DNA of 64,000 bases, taken from positions 124,001 to 188,000 of the IMG/VR virus record IMGVR_UViG_3300028364_000014. One strand, written 5' to 3'. Shown here piece by piece: positions 15,326 through 33,874 of the stretch; within the stretch, counting starts at the first letter, position 1; each line of letters begins with the position of its first letter. The notes under the pieces were generated by a model. The model did not search any database. It saw only the letters and a program-made list of their open reading frames with translations, and had not been told where the DNA came from. Both the position numbers and the translations under genes were made by a program.

Positions 15326-15402
15326 GGCTAATTAACTCAATAGGTAGAGTATAAGGTTTAAAAAAAATCTTAATGTTTCTGGTTCAAATCCAGAATTAGC
15401 CA
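15326..15402 (+). tRNA. tRNA-like gene/pseudo-tRNA with an 11-nt A-rich anticodon loop
   Basis: GGCTAAT/ATTAGCC acceptor, D-arm and GGTTCAAATCC T-arm are intact; loop reads TTTAAAAAAAA. Confidence 0.6.
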
Positions 15403-15443
15403 CAATATAATAATAAACTTATCTTTAATTATGGAATTAAATT

Positions 15444-20867: not shown

Positions 20868-21122
20868 CAAGAGCTAAGAGGTATTAAAAACATGTTTACT
20901 GGAAGTGATGCAAGGTACATGGCAGAACAAAATCATAGTAGATTACAAGAAATTATTATAATGGTTGAAAAAACTGCTTTAAAGGGAGAACTTACATTAG
21001 TTATACATAATGAACCGATAGATCCTACACTAGTTAATATGTTACGAGGATTAAATTATAGAGTAACTTGTGAGGTTAATACGCATGAAAACACTATACA
21101 TAAATTAATTATCGAATGGTAA

Positions 21123-21339
21123 AATAACAGGAAGTTGGCTTAAAGGCAGCCACTTATAATGAGTGAGGCGAAGACCTACTGCTAGTTCATTTGCTTGACA
21201 GGCTTGGTATCGGTTATTAATGTTAAGGTCTGGGCAAACCATGGTGTCCAATAGCGTAGGAGATATCTCGGTAAAGTAACGAAGCACCCCAGAAATGGTA
21301 AGGCGGGTTTCCTCTTTGGCGTAGCAGCACACTATTATT
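21123..21339 (+). ncRNA. 23S rRNA H42-H44 (L11-binding domain) mimic with an insert of about 150 nt
   Basis: CAGGAAGTTGGCTTAAAGGCAGCCAC...AATGAGT and GCGTAGCAGCACACT match 23S nt ~1054-1105 as recalled; closing helix AATAACAG/CTATTATT. Confidence 0.75.
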
Positions 21340-21349
21340 TTATCATTTT

Positions 21350-21628: not shown

Positions 21629-21762
21629 GAAGATTGTAGCTCAACTGGTTAGAGCGGCTGACCCAAAAATCTTTTTGCATCCACTTGTCACCCATCTATG
21701 ACCGAAGTAAAAAGTTTATCATACTTCAGCGAGTTGAGGGTTCAAATCCCTCCAATCTTCCA
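21629..21762 (+). ncRNA. tRNA scaffold with a 64-nt structured insert in the anticodon loop
   Basis: AAGATTG/CAATCTT acceptor, canonical D and T arms, and a GCTGA/TCAGC stem enclosing 21662-21725; G-1:C73. Confidence 0.75.
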
Positions 21763-27127: not shown

Positions 27128-27865
27128 ATGGATACAACAGTTGATTTTACTTTTCCTGTAGTGCCTTTTTGCGAAGCACAATTAAAAGACATAAACCCTT
27201 CAGATATACTTATGAATAATATGTTTAGGGTTTGTAATGTCTATAAGGGTGGTGGAGGATATGATAAGTTTCCTGATATTGCTTTTAGACGTACTGGATG
27301 TATAACAGATAAACAATTTATAGTACAACTTAAAGGATGCCCACTTAAATGTTCTTACTGTTATGTTACTCCTGCCGGTATTAATGGGGAAGCTACATAT
27401 CATTCTTCTGACCTTTTAGTTTCTATATTTAAAACCTCTATGGAATTAAATAAAACTAAGGTATTTCACCTAATGGGCGGAGCTCCAGCAATATATATAG
27501 ATAAGTGGCACCACATCATATCAAAACTACCTAAAGGCGCTATATTTCATTCTGATATCATGCTAATTGAAAAAGCATACAATAAAGTAGACTTTAGTGC
27601 TTTAAATAAACCTAATTGTCTATACGCTGTATCAATAAAGGGAAATAATGCTGAAGAATTTTTTAAGAAAACCAGTACCGAATTAAATGAGAGTTTATTC
27701 TGGAAAAATTTTGATATTGTTGTAAATAGCGGTATAAGTTTTTATATTACATTTACTGATATTAATCCAACTGAAATATATCAAAAAATTGCCGATAGAT
27801 ACGGACTTGGTGTGTTGAAAGACTCATTTACTATTAAAAAAATAGAATATGAAGCTATAAAATAA
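27128..27865 (+). CDS. Radical SAM superfamily protein
   Basis: GCPLKCSYC (CxxxCxxC) and a HLMGGAP (GGEP-like) motif. Confidence 0.75.
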   Translation: MDTTVDFTFPVVPFCEAQLKDINPSDILMNNMFRVCNVYKGGGGYDKFPDIAFRRTGCITDKQFIVQLKGCPLKCSYCYVTPAGINGEATYHSSDLLVSIFKTSMELNKTKVFHLMGGAPAIYIDKWHHIISKLPKGAIFHSDIMLIEKAYNKVDFSALNKPNCLYAVSIKGNNAEEFFKKTSTELNESLFWKNFDIVVNSGISFYITFTDINPTEIYQKIADRYGLGVLKDSFTIKKIEYEAIK

Positions 27866-27968: not shown

Positions 27969-28113
27969 AAAATAATAATAATTAAATAAGGATTTAATTT
28001 ATGAAAGTAATTAAAACTATATGGAAAAAACTAAGCAGTGTTCTGTGTAAAAATGAAATTAATACAGATATTTCTGAGTGTATTCCACGAACAACAATAG
28101 TAAGAAGATAGGG

Positions 28114-28420
28114 TATGTGGGAAGTGGGCTTAGAGGCAGCCAGCTTTTAAAGAGTGAGACAAATACGTATCGCGAATCGATGAACCTATAAGTTGCCATG
28201 AATACTTATAGCGGAGACTGAAACATGGCCAGAGTAAAGAATAGTAGCTACCTTCTTACGAGGTGATGCACGGTTGTGATTTATAAGCTATTATAAAATA
28301 TCATATACTGTAAGATGCAATCCTGCTCCTGATGATGCGAACGAAATAGATATGGCAAGTTGAAAGGAACCCCGTAAATGGTAAGACCTGACATCTCTTT
28401 GGCGTAGAAGCACACCACTA
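28114..28420 (+). ncRNA. Second 23S rRNA H42-H44 mimic with an insert of about 245 nt
   Basis: GGGAAGTGGGCTTAGAGGCAGCCAGCTTTTAAAGAGT ... TCTCTTTGGCGTAGAAGCACAC. Confidence 0.75.
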
Positions 28421-28560
28421 TTTATTAAATATTTATATAAACCTGTAGTTACGAAGGGTATTAGGGAACCTAAGAAATGCCTCACTTCATAAATTGGAGA
28501 TTAATGGCTGGTATAGATCTAATATATTATAGATATTTTTAACAGCAAAGGGCTTAAATA

Positions 28561-31158: not shown

Positions 31159-31233
31159 GCGGAAGTAATTCAATTGGTAGAAGCCTATCCTCCAAGATAG
31201 TTAATGCAAGTTCAATCCTTGCCTTCCGCTCCA
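31159..31233 (+). tRNA. tRNA-Gly-like RNA with a 6-nt anticodon loop (CTCCAA) and encoded CCA
   Basis: GCGGAAG/CTTCCGC acceptor, U73, CCA; paralog of 19662-19736. Confidence 0.75.
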
Positions 31234-31403: not shown

Positions 31404-32624
31404 ATGAAACTATTGAAACTATATAGTCAATTCTATATAAAAAAATTTATTAATCTTTTAAATACTGAAGCCATCCCTCTTGAAATTGTGGATTTATCTG
31501 GTAAGGTATATAAAACCGCGTCAAATAGCATTAGCCATAGGTTAATTATAAAAGATCCTAGATTTTTTAAATCTTTACATTCCCCTAATGCTTTATCTTT
31601 AGGTGAAGCCTACATTAAAGAATACTTTGACATTGAAGGGGATGTTAGAACGCTATATACCATGCTTCATGATAGAATATTGAATACTGAGCAAAAGAAA
31701 AATAAACTAACCTCTTTCATAAAATCTTTTGTGGATGTAAGACAAAAGGAAAAAGAAAATATTGAGTATCACTATGACGCTCCTAGTACTTTTTATAGAA
31801 TTTTTTTAGGGCGAACAATGGGCTATACGTGTGGTTATTATCCTGATCAAACCACCACAATGAGTGAAGCACAAGAAAGAAAAATGGATATCATCTGTAA
31901 AAAATTAAAATTGAAAAAAGGTGAGCATCTTCTAGATGTTGGGTGTGGTTGGGGTAATTTTGCAATTTATGCTGCTGAACACTATGGAGTTACTGTCACA
32001 GGTATTACTTTAAGTGAAGAACAAAAAATATATGCAGACAAATTAGTAGAGGCAAGTCAACTCAGTGTTTCAATTAAAATTATGAACTACCGTGACCTTC
32101 CGTTAAATTATTATGATAAAATATCATGTATTGGGATGTCAGAGCATGTAGGTCAAAAACATATGCAGGAATTTTTTAATACTATATATAAAACACTTAA
32201 ACAAGGCGGATTATTTCTACATCATAGTATCACAACTAATACTAAAAGACAAAAAGGATTAGAAAATTCTTTTTTAAATAAATACATGTACCCTGGAGGG
32301 GAGTTAATGTTTGAGCACGATCTTGTTAAGTGTGCTGAAATAGCTAACTTTGAGTTACTAAATGCTGAGAACTTTAGACCTCATTATGTTACAACGTTGA
32401 ATGATTGGATAGATCGAATAGAGGATAGAAAGTCTGATATATTGAATGTTATTTCCGAACAAGTGTATAGAATATACCATACTTTTTTTATAGGGTCAGC
32501 AGCCTCATTCAAATTAAAAGAAATATCCTTATTTCAAAATCTTTTTTATAAGACTAGTGTATATGACACTGACAATTATTTTAATAGTATCTGTGACTAC
32601 TCCCCCTCTAAGCCGAAGCTATAG
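31404..32624 (+). CDS. cfa: Cyclopropane-fatty-acyl-phospholipid synthase (C-terminus replaced by IS end)
   Basis: IEYHYD, MGYTCGYY, LLDVGCGWG, GITLSEEQ, GMSEHVG, KYMYPGG and HYVTTL..W. Confidence 0.9.
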   Translation: MKLLKLYSQFYIKKFINLLNTEAIPLEIVDLSGKVYKTASNSISHRLIIKDPRFFKSLHSPNALSLGEAYIKEYFDIEGDVRTLYTMLHDRILNTEQKKNKLTSFIKSFVDVRQKEKENIEYHYDAPSTFYRIFLGRTMGYTCGYYPDQTTTMSEAQERKMDIICKKLKLKKGEHLLDVGCGWGNFAIYAAEHYGVTVTGITLSEEQKIYADKLVEASQLSVSIKIMNYRDLPLNYYDKISCIGMSEHVGQKHMQEFFNTIYKTLKQGGLFLHHSITTNTKRQKGLENSFLNKYMYPGGELMFEHDLVKCAEIANFELLNAENFRPHYVTTLNDWIDRIEDRKSDILNVISEQVYRIYHTFFIGSAASFKLKEISLFQNLFYKTSVYDTDNYFNSICDYSPSKPKL

Positions 32625-33874
32625 AGGAGGCTTCTTGGGGGATTAACCCCTGAGACTGTAGCCCCAGTCTCAAAATATTTATGGCAGCATTATGGTCTCT
32701 ATTTAGTACTAAATTGCAGTGAGGACACCTGTGAATTCTGGTTGAAAGGGTCTTTTTTACGACCCGCCCGCAAGCTGGATTTGAGCACATTTGGGATGTA
32801 TATGCTGGATTTACTGGTATTAATTGTTTGCCTAAAATTGATGCTTTATATTGTAGAAAAAGTATGAACTTATTCCAGCTTGCGTCAGCGATAGATTTAT
32901 TTAAACCAGATTTTACCGACGCACCATTAGGTAAATATCCATCAGAATTAGGATCTTTTATTGGAGTAGCTCGCTTAACCATATTCTTTACGTCAAGTTT
33001 TTCATAAACTATAACATTGGAGATAGACAAGAGCTTGTTGGCTGTTTTATGGAGAAAATCATTACGTTGGCACTTTATTCTGTAATGACATTTCCTAATT
33101 GCTTTTAACAGCCTGTAGTATTTCTTTGTTCTTTTAGTAGTTTTTGATAACTTTCTTTGTAGATTAGCGAGACTTTTTTCATTAGCTCTAAAACTTTTTG
33201 GTGATTTTACAGAATTTCCATCTGAATCATAATAGAAATCATTTAAACCTAAATCTATTCCTAAAAAGGTAGTTGGATTCTGCTTAATCTCTACTTTAAG
33301 ATGATTCTCAAAGGAGAAGCAGACAAACCATTTACCAGCTTCTTTGGATATAGTTAAGGTTTTAATTGTTCCATTTTCTGGAATTTCTCTGTGGTATTTA
33401 ATCTTAATATTACCTATTTTGGAGATTTTTAGTATACCATCGACAGGACGTTCTTTAAACTGTGGGTAAGTAATGCTGCTCCAGTCTTTAAACTTTTTAA
33501 ACTTTGGAAAACCCGCCTTAGCTTCCCCAGATTTAATTCTTCTGAAGAAAGATTTATAGGCTGTGTCTAAACGTTTTAGTGTATTTTGAAGCACCTGTGA
33601 ATGTACTGAACCAAACCACGGACGTTCTTTCTTTAGAAAAGTAAGTTCATTGCTTTGTTCAAAAAGACTGATTGAAATACTGTGGTTTTCATAAAGCCAG
33701 ATTCTGTCCTCAAGAGCCCAGTTATACAAATACCTACACATGGAGAACTGATTCTCCAGGCGTGTGGTTTGAGCTTTAGTAGGATAAATTCTGTATTTAT
33801 GTGTAAGTAGCATTTCTCTCCATAAGTAAAATAATTAGTTTCTAATACATAATATATCACAGCATGTGATGTAT
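32593..33874 (-). mobile_element. IS200/IS605-family tnpB-only element (IS1341-like)
   Basis: The - strand right end has a subterminal hairpin ending in TCAC at 32593; left end adjoins TTGAC; rejoining the flanks restores an in-frame cfa C-terminus. No tnpA is present in the window. Confidence 0.8.
32608..33813 (-). CDS. tnpB: RNA-guided endonuclease TnpB
   Basis: HKYRIYPT HTH, GIDLG (RuvC-I), VYEKL (RuvC-II), TSQMCS..C zinc finger and RDHNAAINI (RuvC-III). Confidence 0.95.
   Translation of the reverse strand: MLLTHKYRIYPTKAQTTRLENQFSMCRYLYNWALEDRIWLYENHSISISLFEQSNELTFLKKERPWFGSVHSQVLQNTLKRLDTAYKSFFRRIKSGEAKAGFPKFKKFKDWSSITYPQFKERPVDGILKISKIGNIKIKYHREIPENGTIKTLTISKEAGKWFVCFSFENHLKVEIKQNPTTFLGIDLGLNDFYYDSDGNSVKSPKSFRANEKSLANLQRKLSKTTKRTKKYYRLLKAIRKCHYRIKCQRNDFLHKTANKLLSISNVIVYEKLDVKNMVKRATPIKDPNSDGYLPNGASVKSGLNKSIADASWNKFILFLQYKASILGKQLIPVNPAYTSQMCSNPACGRVVKKTLSTRIHRCPHCNLVLNRDHNAAINILRLGLQSQGLIPQEASSIASA

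Follow-up and report, generated by a model that had tools for sequence, protein, structure and literature searches.

The 64,000-nucleotide window analyzed here (positions 124,001 to 188,000 of the IMG/VR virus record IMGVR_UViG_3300028364_000014, a contig of 237,910 bp) carries, at 28117-28418, an element that copies the L11-binding domain of 23S rRNA, known as the GTPase-associated center (GAC; nucleotides 1051-1108 in the Escherichia coli numbering used throughout). A related element lies further upstream in the window; the upstream element is referred to as copy 1 and the element at 28117-28418 as copy 2. We found that both belong to a large, so far undescribed, phage-specific and modular RNA family in which an rRNA-like frame carries a variable cargo domain. 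The rRNA-like fold of this family is under selection. The family almost certainly consists of functional RNAs that mimic the GAC, and phages probably employ them to manipulate a central component of host translation. A search of the literature found no description of a GAC-like phage RNA family, and Rfam holds no family for it.

The first-pass annotation of the window, made from the sequence alone, had described H43 and H44 elements and a junction frame at this site. Direct reading and alignment to the Rfam bacterial large subunit (LSU) rRNA model (RF02541) bore out this description: positions 28117-28173 aligned to model positions 1093-1148, which represent the GAC, with an E value of 0.003. 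This match scored 16.9 bits against an RF02541 gathering score of 50 and therefore does not qualify the element as an rRNA fragment or pseudogene. A fragment of rRNA would show an uninterrupted H44 and U1101; here, H44 is broken by a 242-nt insert (28156-28397), placed between U1090 and G1091, plus a UUUG linker, and position 1101 is an A. Outside positions 1051-1108, nothing rRNA-like was detected at the element, which is flanked by open reading frames (ORFs) and tRNA genes. An 18-nt motif from the 3′ part of the frame occurred twice in the window, compared to 0.01 expected occurrences. Rfam scans of the window, its 22-kb tRNA region, the element, and 16 family loci returned only tRNAs, transfer-messenger RNA (tmRNA), and weak LSU rRNA matches, and neither ARAGORN nor Rfam called a tRNA or tmRNA over 28100-28430. 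When folded as single sequences, neither copy stood out (z = +1.54 in copy 1 and +0.34 in copy 2); only comparison reveals the GAC-like fold.

The first-pass annotation had recommended a search of viral metagenomes for covariation. An exact scan of IMG/VR with the 18-nt 3′ motif yielded 70 loci, and a scan with a 16-nt motif from H43 (the 5′ half of the frame) yielded at least 120 loci. After removal of duplicates, at least 125 distinct elements were obtained, with copy 2 as an additional one, and the family counts given below rest on these loci. All helices of the frame (H42, H43, and H44) and both loops are kept by these homologs. In nearly all motif matches, the half not used as the query lay at a distance of 40 to 490 nt, and contiguous ordinary rRNA accounted for only 2 of the at least 100 5′-motif matches listed. 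The carrier contigs span 35 to 65% GC.

The claim that selection acts on an rRNA-like fold, and that the element is not a stray piece of rRNA, was upheld by the covariation analysis. RNAalifold, applied to 28 short members, recovered H42, the H43 helix in both its parts, a helix of 3 to 4 bp at the base of the insert (P-ins), and the H44 hairpin, and a covariance model built from the resulting alignment produced full-length matches of up to 124 bits; copy 1 was matched with 74.9 bits (E = 8e-20). The model splits members with a cargo longer than about 270 nt (copy 2 included), and their frame statistics were obtained with anchor-based scripts. In the covariance-model alignment, 91.6% of the cells paired, compared to 69.5% in shuffles, and double (compensatory) changes were present at 19 of 23 modeled pairs. 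The covariation score of 0.401 was reached by none of 500 shuffles, which gave 0.105, and sliding the pairing partners lowered it to 0.114 or less. When 144 anchor pairs were evaluated with no filter on H42, 5.94 of its 7 positions paired in register, compared to 2.3 to 3.3 after a shift of 1 to 3 nt. Positions 1051-1055 were paired with 1104-1108 in 89 to 98% of cases, and all four Watson-Crick types were used. In the lower H43, which also covaried, pairs 1057:1081 (AU 86, CG 15) and 1058:1080 (UA 37, GC 34, AU 21, CG 7) were 100% paired. The isolated pair 1082:1086, a lone pair that is a hallmark of the rRNA domain, also covaried (UA 51, CG 30, AU 12). The first four pairs of P-ins were formed in 100, 97, 93, and 75% of the members with every pair type represented, and a shifted control mostly gave 0 to 2 bp. 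Thus, the H42/H43/H44 three-way junction that defines the GAC/L11-binding-domain fold class is supported by covariation in the family. Matches of the LSU model in the family loci fell on GAC positions only (e.g., 31.4 bits at locus L112).

Each of the two scans fixed one half of the frame, so that the other half provides a measure of conservation that is unbiased by selection. In the subset found with the 3′ motif, the H43 nucleotides G1059 (47/47), U1060 (46/47), U1066 (47/47), A1067 (43/47), G1071 (45/47), C1072 (46/47), and A1073 (46/47) were retained, and the H43 loop was 91 to 100% conserved except at positions 1065 (39/47), 1068 (37/47), and 1070 (32/47). In the subset found with the 5′ motif, G1093, U1094, A1098, A1101, and A1103 were present in all 78 members and A1095 in 72 of them. 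U1060 and its tertiary partner A1088 were kept in 101 of 101 members, and the nucleotides of GAGU were kept in 99 to 101 of 101. In crystal structures of the domain, tertiary contacts link U1060 to A1088, 1082 to 1086, G1071 and C1072 to the stem of H44, U1065 to A1073, and G1093 to A1098. The nucleotides of this tertiary core (U1060, A1088, G1071, C1072, A1073, G1093, and A1098) were 96 to 100% conserved in the unselected subsets, with U1065 as the exception.

These data also bear on whether the element could be a nonfunctional remnant, either a captured piece of 23S rRNA split by an intron (or another intervening sequence) or a site that acts at the DNA level, e.g., in attachment or homing. 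Excision of the insert together with UUUG would restore the rRNA consensus GAGU/GCGUAA, and the ends of the interruption resemble group I splice sites, with a U in the 5′ flank (U1090 in 99 of 101 members) and a G at the end of the insert (in UUUG). We judge this likeness to be coincidental because no intron model matches and the inserts go down to 41 nt, compared to about 200 nt or more for group I introns. The Rfam search for group I and other introns covered E values up to 10, and a group I core (P3-P9) was not detected. The strong covariation at the RNA level, a closing stem that is not rRNA sequence, the scarcity of contiguous rRNA among the 5′-motif matches listed, and the invariance of A1101 and UUUG across phages of such different GC content likewise make a remnant extremely improbable.

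Several features set the family apart from rRNA. Throughout the family, an additional helix, placed exactly at the U1090/G1091 step, converts the three-way junction of rRNA, in which H44 is coaxially stacked on H42 and H43 leans against H44, into a four-way junction. The UUUG linker that follows the helix is invariant (its positions were retained in 72 to 77 of 78 members of the unselected subset). Position 1101, which is U in the Rfam LSU consensus, was A in 126 of 126 family members, so that U1090 and A1101 form a Watson-Crick pair. GAGU (1087-1090) is invariant in the family, whereas positions 1089-1090 vary in rRNA. Below 1051/1108, the closing stem is a plain covarying helix without conserved sequence. 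In rRNA, the lower part of H42 holds the L10 site, Kt-42, and the H97 contact (PMC2952862). Since the closing stem has no conserved sequence, the L11 site is mimicked and these three features are not copied. In about 13% of the members, a second hairpin, often with a YUUGAGMA loop, is inserted into H43 after A1077 and before U1078 (loci L099, L075, L096, L154, L157, L029, L131, L166, and L178, among others). The CUCUUU stretch around 28394-28400 of copy 2 is also complementary to AAAGAG (1084-1089, on the 28149-28152 side). This possible alternative pairing would unfold the junction, and the part of it that is compatible with the whole family is limited to (C/U)UUU with AAAG. RNAalifold instead pairs the UG of the UUUG linker with A1103 and C1102.

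Compared to rRNA, positions 1056, 1061, 1068, 1070, and 1096 are less strictly conserved, and three of them (1068, 1070, and 1096) are located in exposed loops. The first-pass annotation had pointed to A1070G- and A1096G-equivalent changes shared by both copies. Both copies indeed carry G at both positions; as family features, the changes did not hold, since position 1070 was A in 32 and G in 15 members of the unselected subset and position 1096 was A in 71 and G in 6 of 78. A tertiary covariation between the two positions was considered and rejected, as they showed no association (Fisher P = 1). A third of the members have A or G at position 1061. The U1061A change stabilizes the isolated L11-binding domain, and the relaxation of this position would suit an RNA that has to fold independently. 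In summary, the phage RNA and the rRNA GAC (a type C three-way junction) share their helices, the nucleotides of the tertiary pairs, the covarying pairs 1057:1081, 1058:1080, and 1082:1086, the match to the LSU model at exactly the GAC positions, and, in most members, the loops UUAGAAGCA and GUAAUA. They differ in that the phage RNA is a free-standing gene of 110 to 500 nt in tRNA arrays, its H44 is interrupted after U1090 by helix, cargo, and UUUG, its position 1101 is always A, the lower H42 is missing, and some members have the expansion at A1077. The layout of both window copies is given in Table 1.

Table 1. Features of the two GAC-like elements (positions refer to the 64,000-nt window)
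Feature	Position	Strand	Remarks
Copy 1 of the GAC-like RNA	21122..21340	+	Ends 9-10 nt before tRNA-Glu (tRNA start 21349/21350)
Copy 1, class A cargo	21165..21314	+	150-nt insert
Copy 2 of the GAC-like RNA	28117..28418	+	Whole 23S rRNA 1051-1108 junction (H42/H43/H44), E. coli numbering; read directly
H42, 5′ strand	28117..28120	+	1052-1055; pairs with 28415-28418
H43 hairpin	28122..28146	+	1057-1081; from Rfam LSU model alignment and family covariation
H43 loop UUAGAGGCA	28130..28138	+	A1067 at 28132; A1070G variant at 28135
UUAAA turn	28147..28151	+	1082-1086; junction, 5′ part; read directly
GAGU	28152..28155	+	1087-1090; junction, 3′ part; contains A1088
P-ins (helix at insert base), 5′ strand GAGA	28156..28159	+	Pairs with UCUC at 28394-28397
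Class A cargo domain	28160..28393	+	5′ module CAAAU ACG... first, conserved 3′ module last; from alignment and RNAalifold
Cargo 3′ module, AAGU	28357..28360	+	From class A alignment
Cargo 3′ module, hairpin	28366..28389	+	3-bp stem, GNRA/UMAC-like tetraloop (28375-28378), UAAG bulge
P-ins, 3′ strand UCUC	28394..28397	+	Pairs with 28156-28159
UUUG linker	28398..28401	+	Between P-ins and G1091; no counterpart in rRNA
Upper H44 hairpin GCGUAGAAGC	28402..28411	+	1091-1100; A1095 at 28406; A1096G variant at 28407
A1101, C1102, A1103, and H42 3′ strand (C1104-C1107)	28412..28418	+	Begins ACAC; read directly

The insert of copy 2, estimated at about 245 nt in the first-pass annotation, had been regarded there as unrelated to that of copy 1. 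This view had to be revised, as the two inserts are homologous. Their last 62 nt aligned with a score of 13, compared to -4.6 ± 3.4 for shuffles, and none of 2,000 shuffles reached this value; their first 24 nt also aligned better than expected by chance (matched by 17 of 2,000 shuffles). In the middle, the alignment was no better than that of shuffles, and the copy 2 cargo contains about 90 nt that have no counterpart in copy 1. Both inserts share a 5′ module (GAGRC-RAA-) and a 3′ module of about 60 nt, which consists of AAGU and a hairpin of the form RGC-A-CCCC-[tetraloop]-GG-UAAG-GCY. Clustering of 108 inserts yielded 55 clusters, and both window inserts fell into the largest one, class A, with 34 members. 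The stem of the class A hairpin covaries (pair 298:318 is GC in 14 and UA in 7 cases), and no Rfam family matches the class A cargo. At least two other cargo classes recur, one with UGCGAAAUG...GUGAUGUG and one ending in GACCCUUAGAGC. Insert lengths in the family range from 41 to 441 nt (median, 135 nt), and the cargo of minimal members is a hairpin only, which in the L004 group is a single hairpin of 25 nt. At the level of the family, the earlier idea of a conserved frame with variable cargo was thus correct. Since class A cargos contain a GNRA-capped hairpin and an AGUR/GAA strand pair, we considered a mimic of the sarcin-ricin loop, which would complete a factor-binding site; this was rejected because the arrangement differs and the LSU model fails to match the cargo. 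K-turn and 11-nt tetraloop-receptor readings of the cargo motifs were checked by hand, and neither fits the consensus. Tandem copies were observed at locus L030 (3845-4087 and 4098-4337, minus strand, 10 nt apart), reminiscent of the pair of copies carried by the window's phage, and at locus L132 (5138 and 5456, plus strand).

The modularity raises the possibility that the frame, bound by ribosomal protein uL11 (L11) or simply very stable, serves only as a scaffold that protects and presents the cargo, and that activity resides in the cargo, for instance in an RNA- or protein-binding module. This would be in line with the recurrence of cargo classes with conserved motifs and covariation in unrelated phages (class A being the example with 34 members), with the wide range of cargo lengths, and with the finding that phages can carry two copies with different cargos, as in the window's phage and the L030 tandem. 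However, members whose cargo is a minimal hairpin keep the frame intact, half of the cargo clusters are singletons, and the conservation of the frame is far above the needs of a mere stabilizer. We therefore consider a pure scaffold unlikely.

Outside the metagenomic contigs, the element was found in cultured phages, namely, Aeromonas phage 4_4572, Cronobacter phage GAP32, Pectobacterium phage CBB, Serratia phage BF, Erwinia pEa_SNUABM phages, Xanthomonas phages XacN1 and XbC2, Ralstonia phage RSP15, Pseudomonas phage pf16, Acinetobacter phage ME3, Paenibacillus phage Pd_22F, and others. GAP32, CBB, XacN1, and Aeromonas phage 4_4572 are jumbo phages. The element lacks an annotation in all cultured carriers except Pseudomonas phage Milchi and Erwinia phage Kaldavass, in which a hypothetical protein is annotated over it. 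When the commoner form of the 3′ motif was searched in one genome for each of 185,579 species, 57 places matched. About 35 to 40 of these are real elements, mostly on contigs of metagenome-assembled genomes with same-strand tRNA arrays, and about 15 are chance matches inside ORFs. From this outcome, we conclude that the GAC-like RNA family is essentially viral.

The genomic setting is dominated by tRNA genes. The window itself is phage sequence of 33% GC with about 18 tRNA genes on the plus strand between 15.3 and 34.2 kb. Among the 125 fetched element loci, 92 contained tRNA genes, and the nearest one was always on the same strand as the element; over all loci, 794 tRNA genes shared the strand of the element and 1 was opposite. 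In 50 instances, the element was located within 50 nt of a tRNA gene, and tmRNA was also present in 7 loci. No recurrent neighboring protein family was found in the 125 loci (the commonest occurred in 5 of them), which points to a host or universal partner. A scan of promoter and terminator consensus sequences gave no more sites than in shuffles. In the window, the neighbors are a 36-amino-acid (aa) ORF, a radical S-adenosylmethionine (SAM) protein (27128-27865, plus strand), an alpha/beta hydrolase, a cyclopropane-fatty-acid-synthase-like methyltransferase (31404-32624, plus strand), and TnpB. The radical SAM protein and methyltransferase genes, located in the tRNA region, are auxiliary genes that are unusual for a phage. 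Apart from the gene of the transposon-associated TnpB/IS605 OrfB nuclease (32608-33813, minus strand; helix-turn-helix, OrfB_IS605, and Cas12f-like TNB domains), no large gene within the plus-strand tRNA array is encoded on the minus strand. Some tRNA calls of the window were odd. At 21630-21760 (plus strand), Rfam detected a tRNA spanning 131 nt (50.7 bits) where ARAGORN made no call; the anticodon stem of this apparent tRNA gene seems to be followed by about 58 inserted nucleotides, perhaps an intron. The calls at 31159-31233 and 15326-15403 (plus strand) comprise one unassignable two-base "anticodon" (cc) and one tRNA-Phe with the anticodon AAA.

The tight linkage to tRNA genes would be compatible with an off-ribosome docking platform, on which a ligand of the face formed by positions 1067 and 1095 is bound with or without uL11 and which acts on the traffic of tRNAs and factors, not on the uL11 supply. 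Candidate ligands would be domain V of EF-G, release factors, and the tRNA elbow in the A/T or RelA-bound state. EF-G can bind to free oligonucleotides from the GAC domain, and the tRNA elbow is touched by A1067. The conservation of A1067 and A1095, the presence of tmRNA in some loci, and calls of an amber-suppressor tRNA(CUA) in 11 loci would also suit such a platform. On the other hand, contacts of this kind are weak off the ribosome, conservation is relaxed at positions 1068, 1070, and 1096, and the window uses the standard genetic code, which fits its coding density, so that stop-codon recoding in this phage was rejected. Overall, a docking platform appears quite improbable. The 11 tRNA(CUA) calls, labeled "Pyl" by ARAGORN, lie in the tRNA arrays of the element (L003, L017, L030, L031, L058, L067, and others) and hint that some carrier phages reassign TAG. 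When TAG was read as a sense codon across the whole window, the number of ORFs of at least 600 aa rose from 3 to 5; a few large genes of the window may carry an in-frame TAG.

As the most plausible function, we propose that the RNA acts on uL11. The element is very likely the gene of a stable noncoding RNA, and its frame copies the 58-nt L11-binding domain: H42 closes the domain, H43 and H44 dock through their loops, the 1082-1086 turn completes the junction, and the helix between U1090 and G1091 carries the variable cargo domain. On the simplest reading of the tRNA-array setting, the RNA is probably cotranscribed with the tRNAs and freed by tRNA-processing nucleases. Like the isolated rRNA domain, the folded frame would then bind host uL11 without the ribosome and serve as a decoy of the L11 stalk base that cuts the uL11 supply to ribosomes. 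A shortage of uL11 is known to weaken RelA-dependent stringent signaling and to change the efficiency of release factors, and a phage decoy could act in this way. Alternatively or additionally, the RNA might titrate a factor that recognizes the 1067/1095 face, and the cargo might add class-specific stability or contacts. The GAC-like RNA probably binds uL11; we give the decoy or titration mechanism as outlined here a probability of roughly 0.45, a little below even odds.

A frame-centered function involving uL11 is favored because the core on which the fold and uL11 recognition depend is essentially invariant, with several exposed loop positions being relaxed, and because position 1061 has drifted to A or G, of which the former is stabilizing, in a considerable share of the members. 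That the frame itself is functional is indicated by the shortest members, since these carry small cargos only (41-nt inserts and the L004 hairpin). RelA activation requires L11, and ribosomes deficient in L11 fail to activate RelA. Furthermore, Van Dyke, Xu and Murgola (in J Mol Biol, 2002) reportedly expressed an L11-binding rRNA fragment in E. coli and found that it limited L11 and altered termination. Several points weigh against a uL11 decoy. The hairpin at A1077 is located in the H43 stem contacted by the C-terminal domain of L11 and might disturb binding. A1067 and A1095 are more than 90% conserved though dispensable for L11 binding, so that another ligand may use this face. To titrate a ribosomal protein this abundant would be demanding for a phage with a short lytic cycle, and L11 binding does not explain why UUUG and A1101 are invariant and the inserted helix obligatory. 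Finally, the conserved cargo classes suggest functions of their own.

The conservation of the 1067/1095 face, which is not needed for the fold, could also reflect a decoy or tight pseudosubstrate for a host effector that attacks the GAC, such as an abortive-infection or competitor toxin modifying or cutting H43/H44, so that ribosomes are spared. We know of no anti-phage system that targets the GAC site of rRNA, and this speaks against such an effector, as does the consideration that a substrate-like RNA competes poorly with tens of thousands of ribosomes for a catalytic enzyme. A toxin of the required type does exist, in that Tre23 ADP-ribosylates H44 at 1095-1098 and blocks the GTPase of EF-G (PMC8661411). 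The A1096G variants, including both window copies, would change the target stretch of a Tre23-type toxin, though A1096G is a minority form in the unselected subset. The position of the element in tRNA arrays, which are themselves regarded as anti-defense cargo, would fit an effector decoy as well. On balance, we regard this explanation as unlikely, and the uL11-directed function remains our preferred reading.

The GAC-like RNA falls outside all of the classes considered, namely, rRNA fragments, introns, tRNA and tmRNA, ribosomal-protein leaders, and the ROOL and GOLLD families. RNAs imitating protein-binding sites of rRNA have, to our knowledge, been described only among the leaders of ribosomal-protein operons, which are cis-acting and resemble rRNA loosely. 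Like the leaders of the L1 and L10 operons, the phage RNA copies a protein-binding site of rRNA off the ribosome. However, those leaders are cis-regulatory, only loosely rRNA-like, and located upstream of ribosomal-protein genes, whereas the phage RNA is modular, has a core nearly identical to rRNA, and does not adjoin a ribosomal-protein gene. The plasmid-expressed fragment mentioned above is likewise said to be a free copy of the domain with an L11-limiting effect in vivo, as in the mechanism that we propose; it is a laboratory construct, in contrast to the phage RNA gene, which occurs naturally, is under selection, and has gained a junction and a cargo. ROOL and GOLLD are also structured noncoding RNAs that adjoin phage tRNA genes, but they are larger and are not rRNA mimics, and no Rfam match to them was obtained in the window or in the 16 family loci. 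Phage RNA decoys such as pseudo-ToxI and the tRNAs that bypass anticodon nucleases resemble the GAC-like RNA in that a phage RNA imitates a host RNA to neutralize or bypass a host activity. They differ in that the GAC-like RNA imitates an rRNA domain and has no known cognate defense system.

At the least, these results reveal a new large RNA family that has been missed by current annotation pipelines. A near-exact, covariation-supported copy of a highly conserved ribosomal center exists as an independent gene in at least 100 phage genomes, and its carriers include cultured jumbo phages that are open to laboratory manipulation. The family also provides a ready set of variants for studying the folding and recognition of the GAC domain. 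If uL11 or a stalk-recognizing factor is bound, the RNA would represent a new viral route to reprogram translation or to evade ribosome-linked defenses and, in addition, a natural modular RNA design in which a fixed protein-binding frame is combined with an exchangeable cargo. More tentatively, phages may encode a class of "ribosome-piece" RNAs, i.e., free-standing replicas of the stalk base that are loaded with uL11 and have interchangeable cargos aimed at different partners, as a general counter to ribosome-linked host responses such as stringent signaling, stalk-dependent toxins, and release-factor competition (in phages with suppressor tRNAs). If this is true, "ribosome-piece" RNAs would be to rRNA what phage tRNA arrays are to tRNA.

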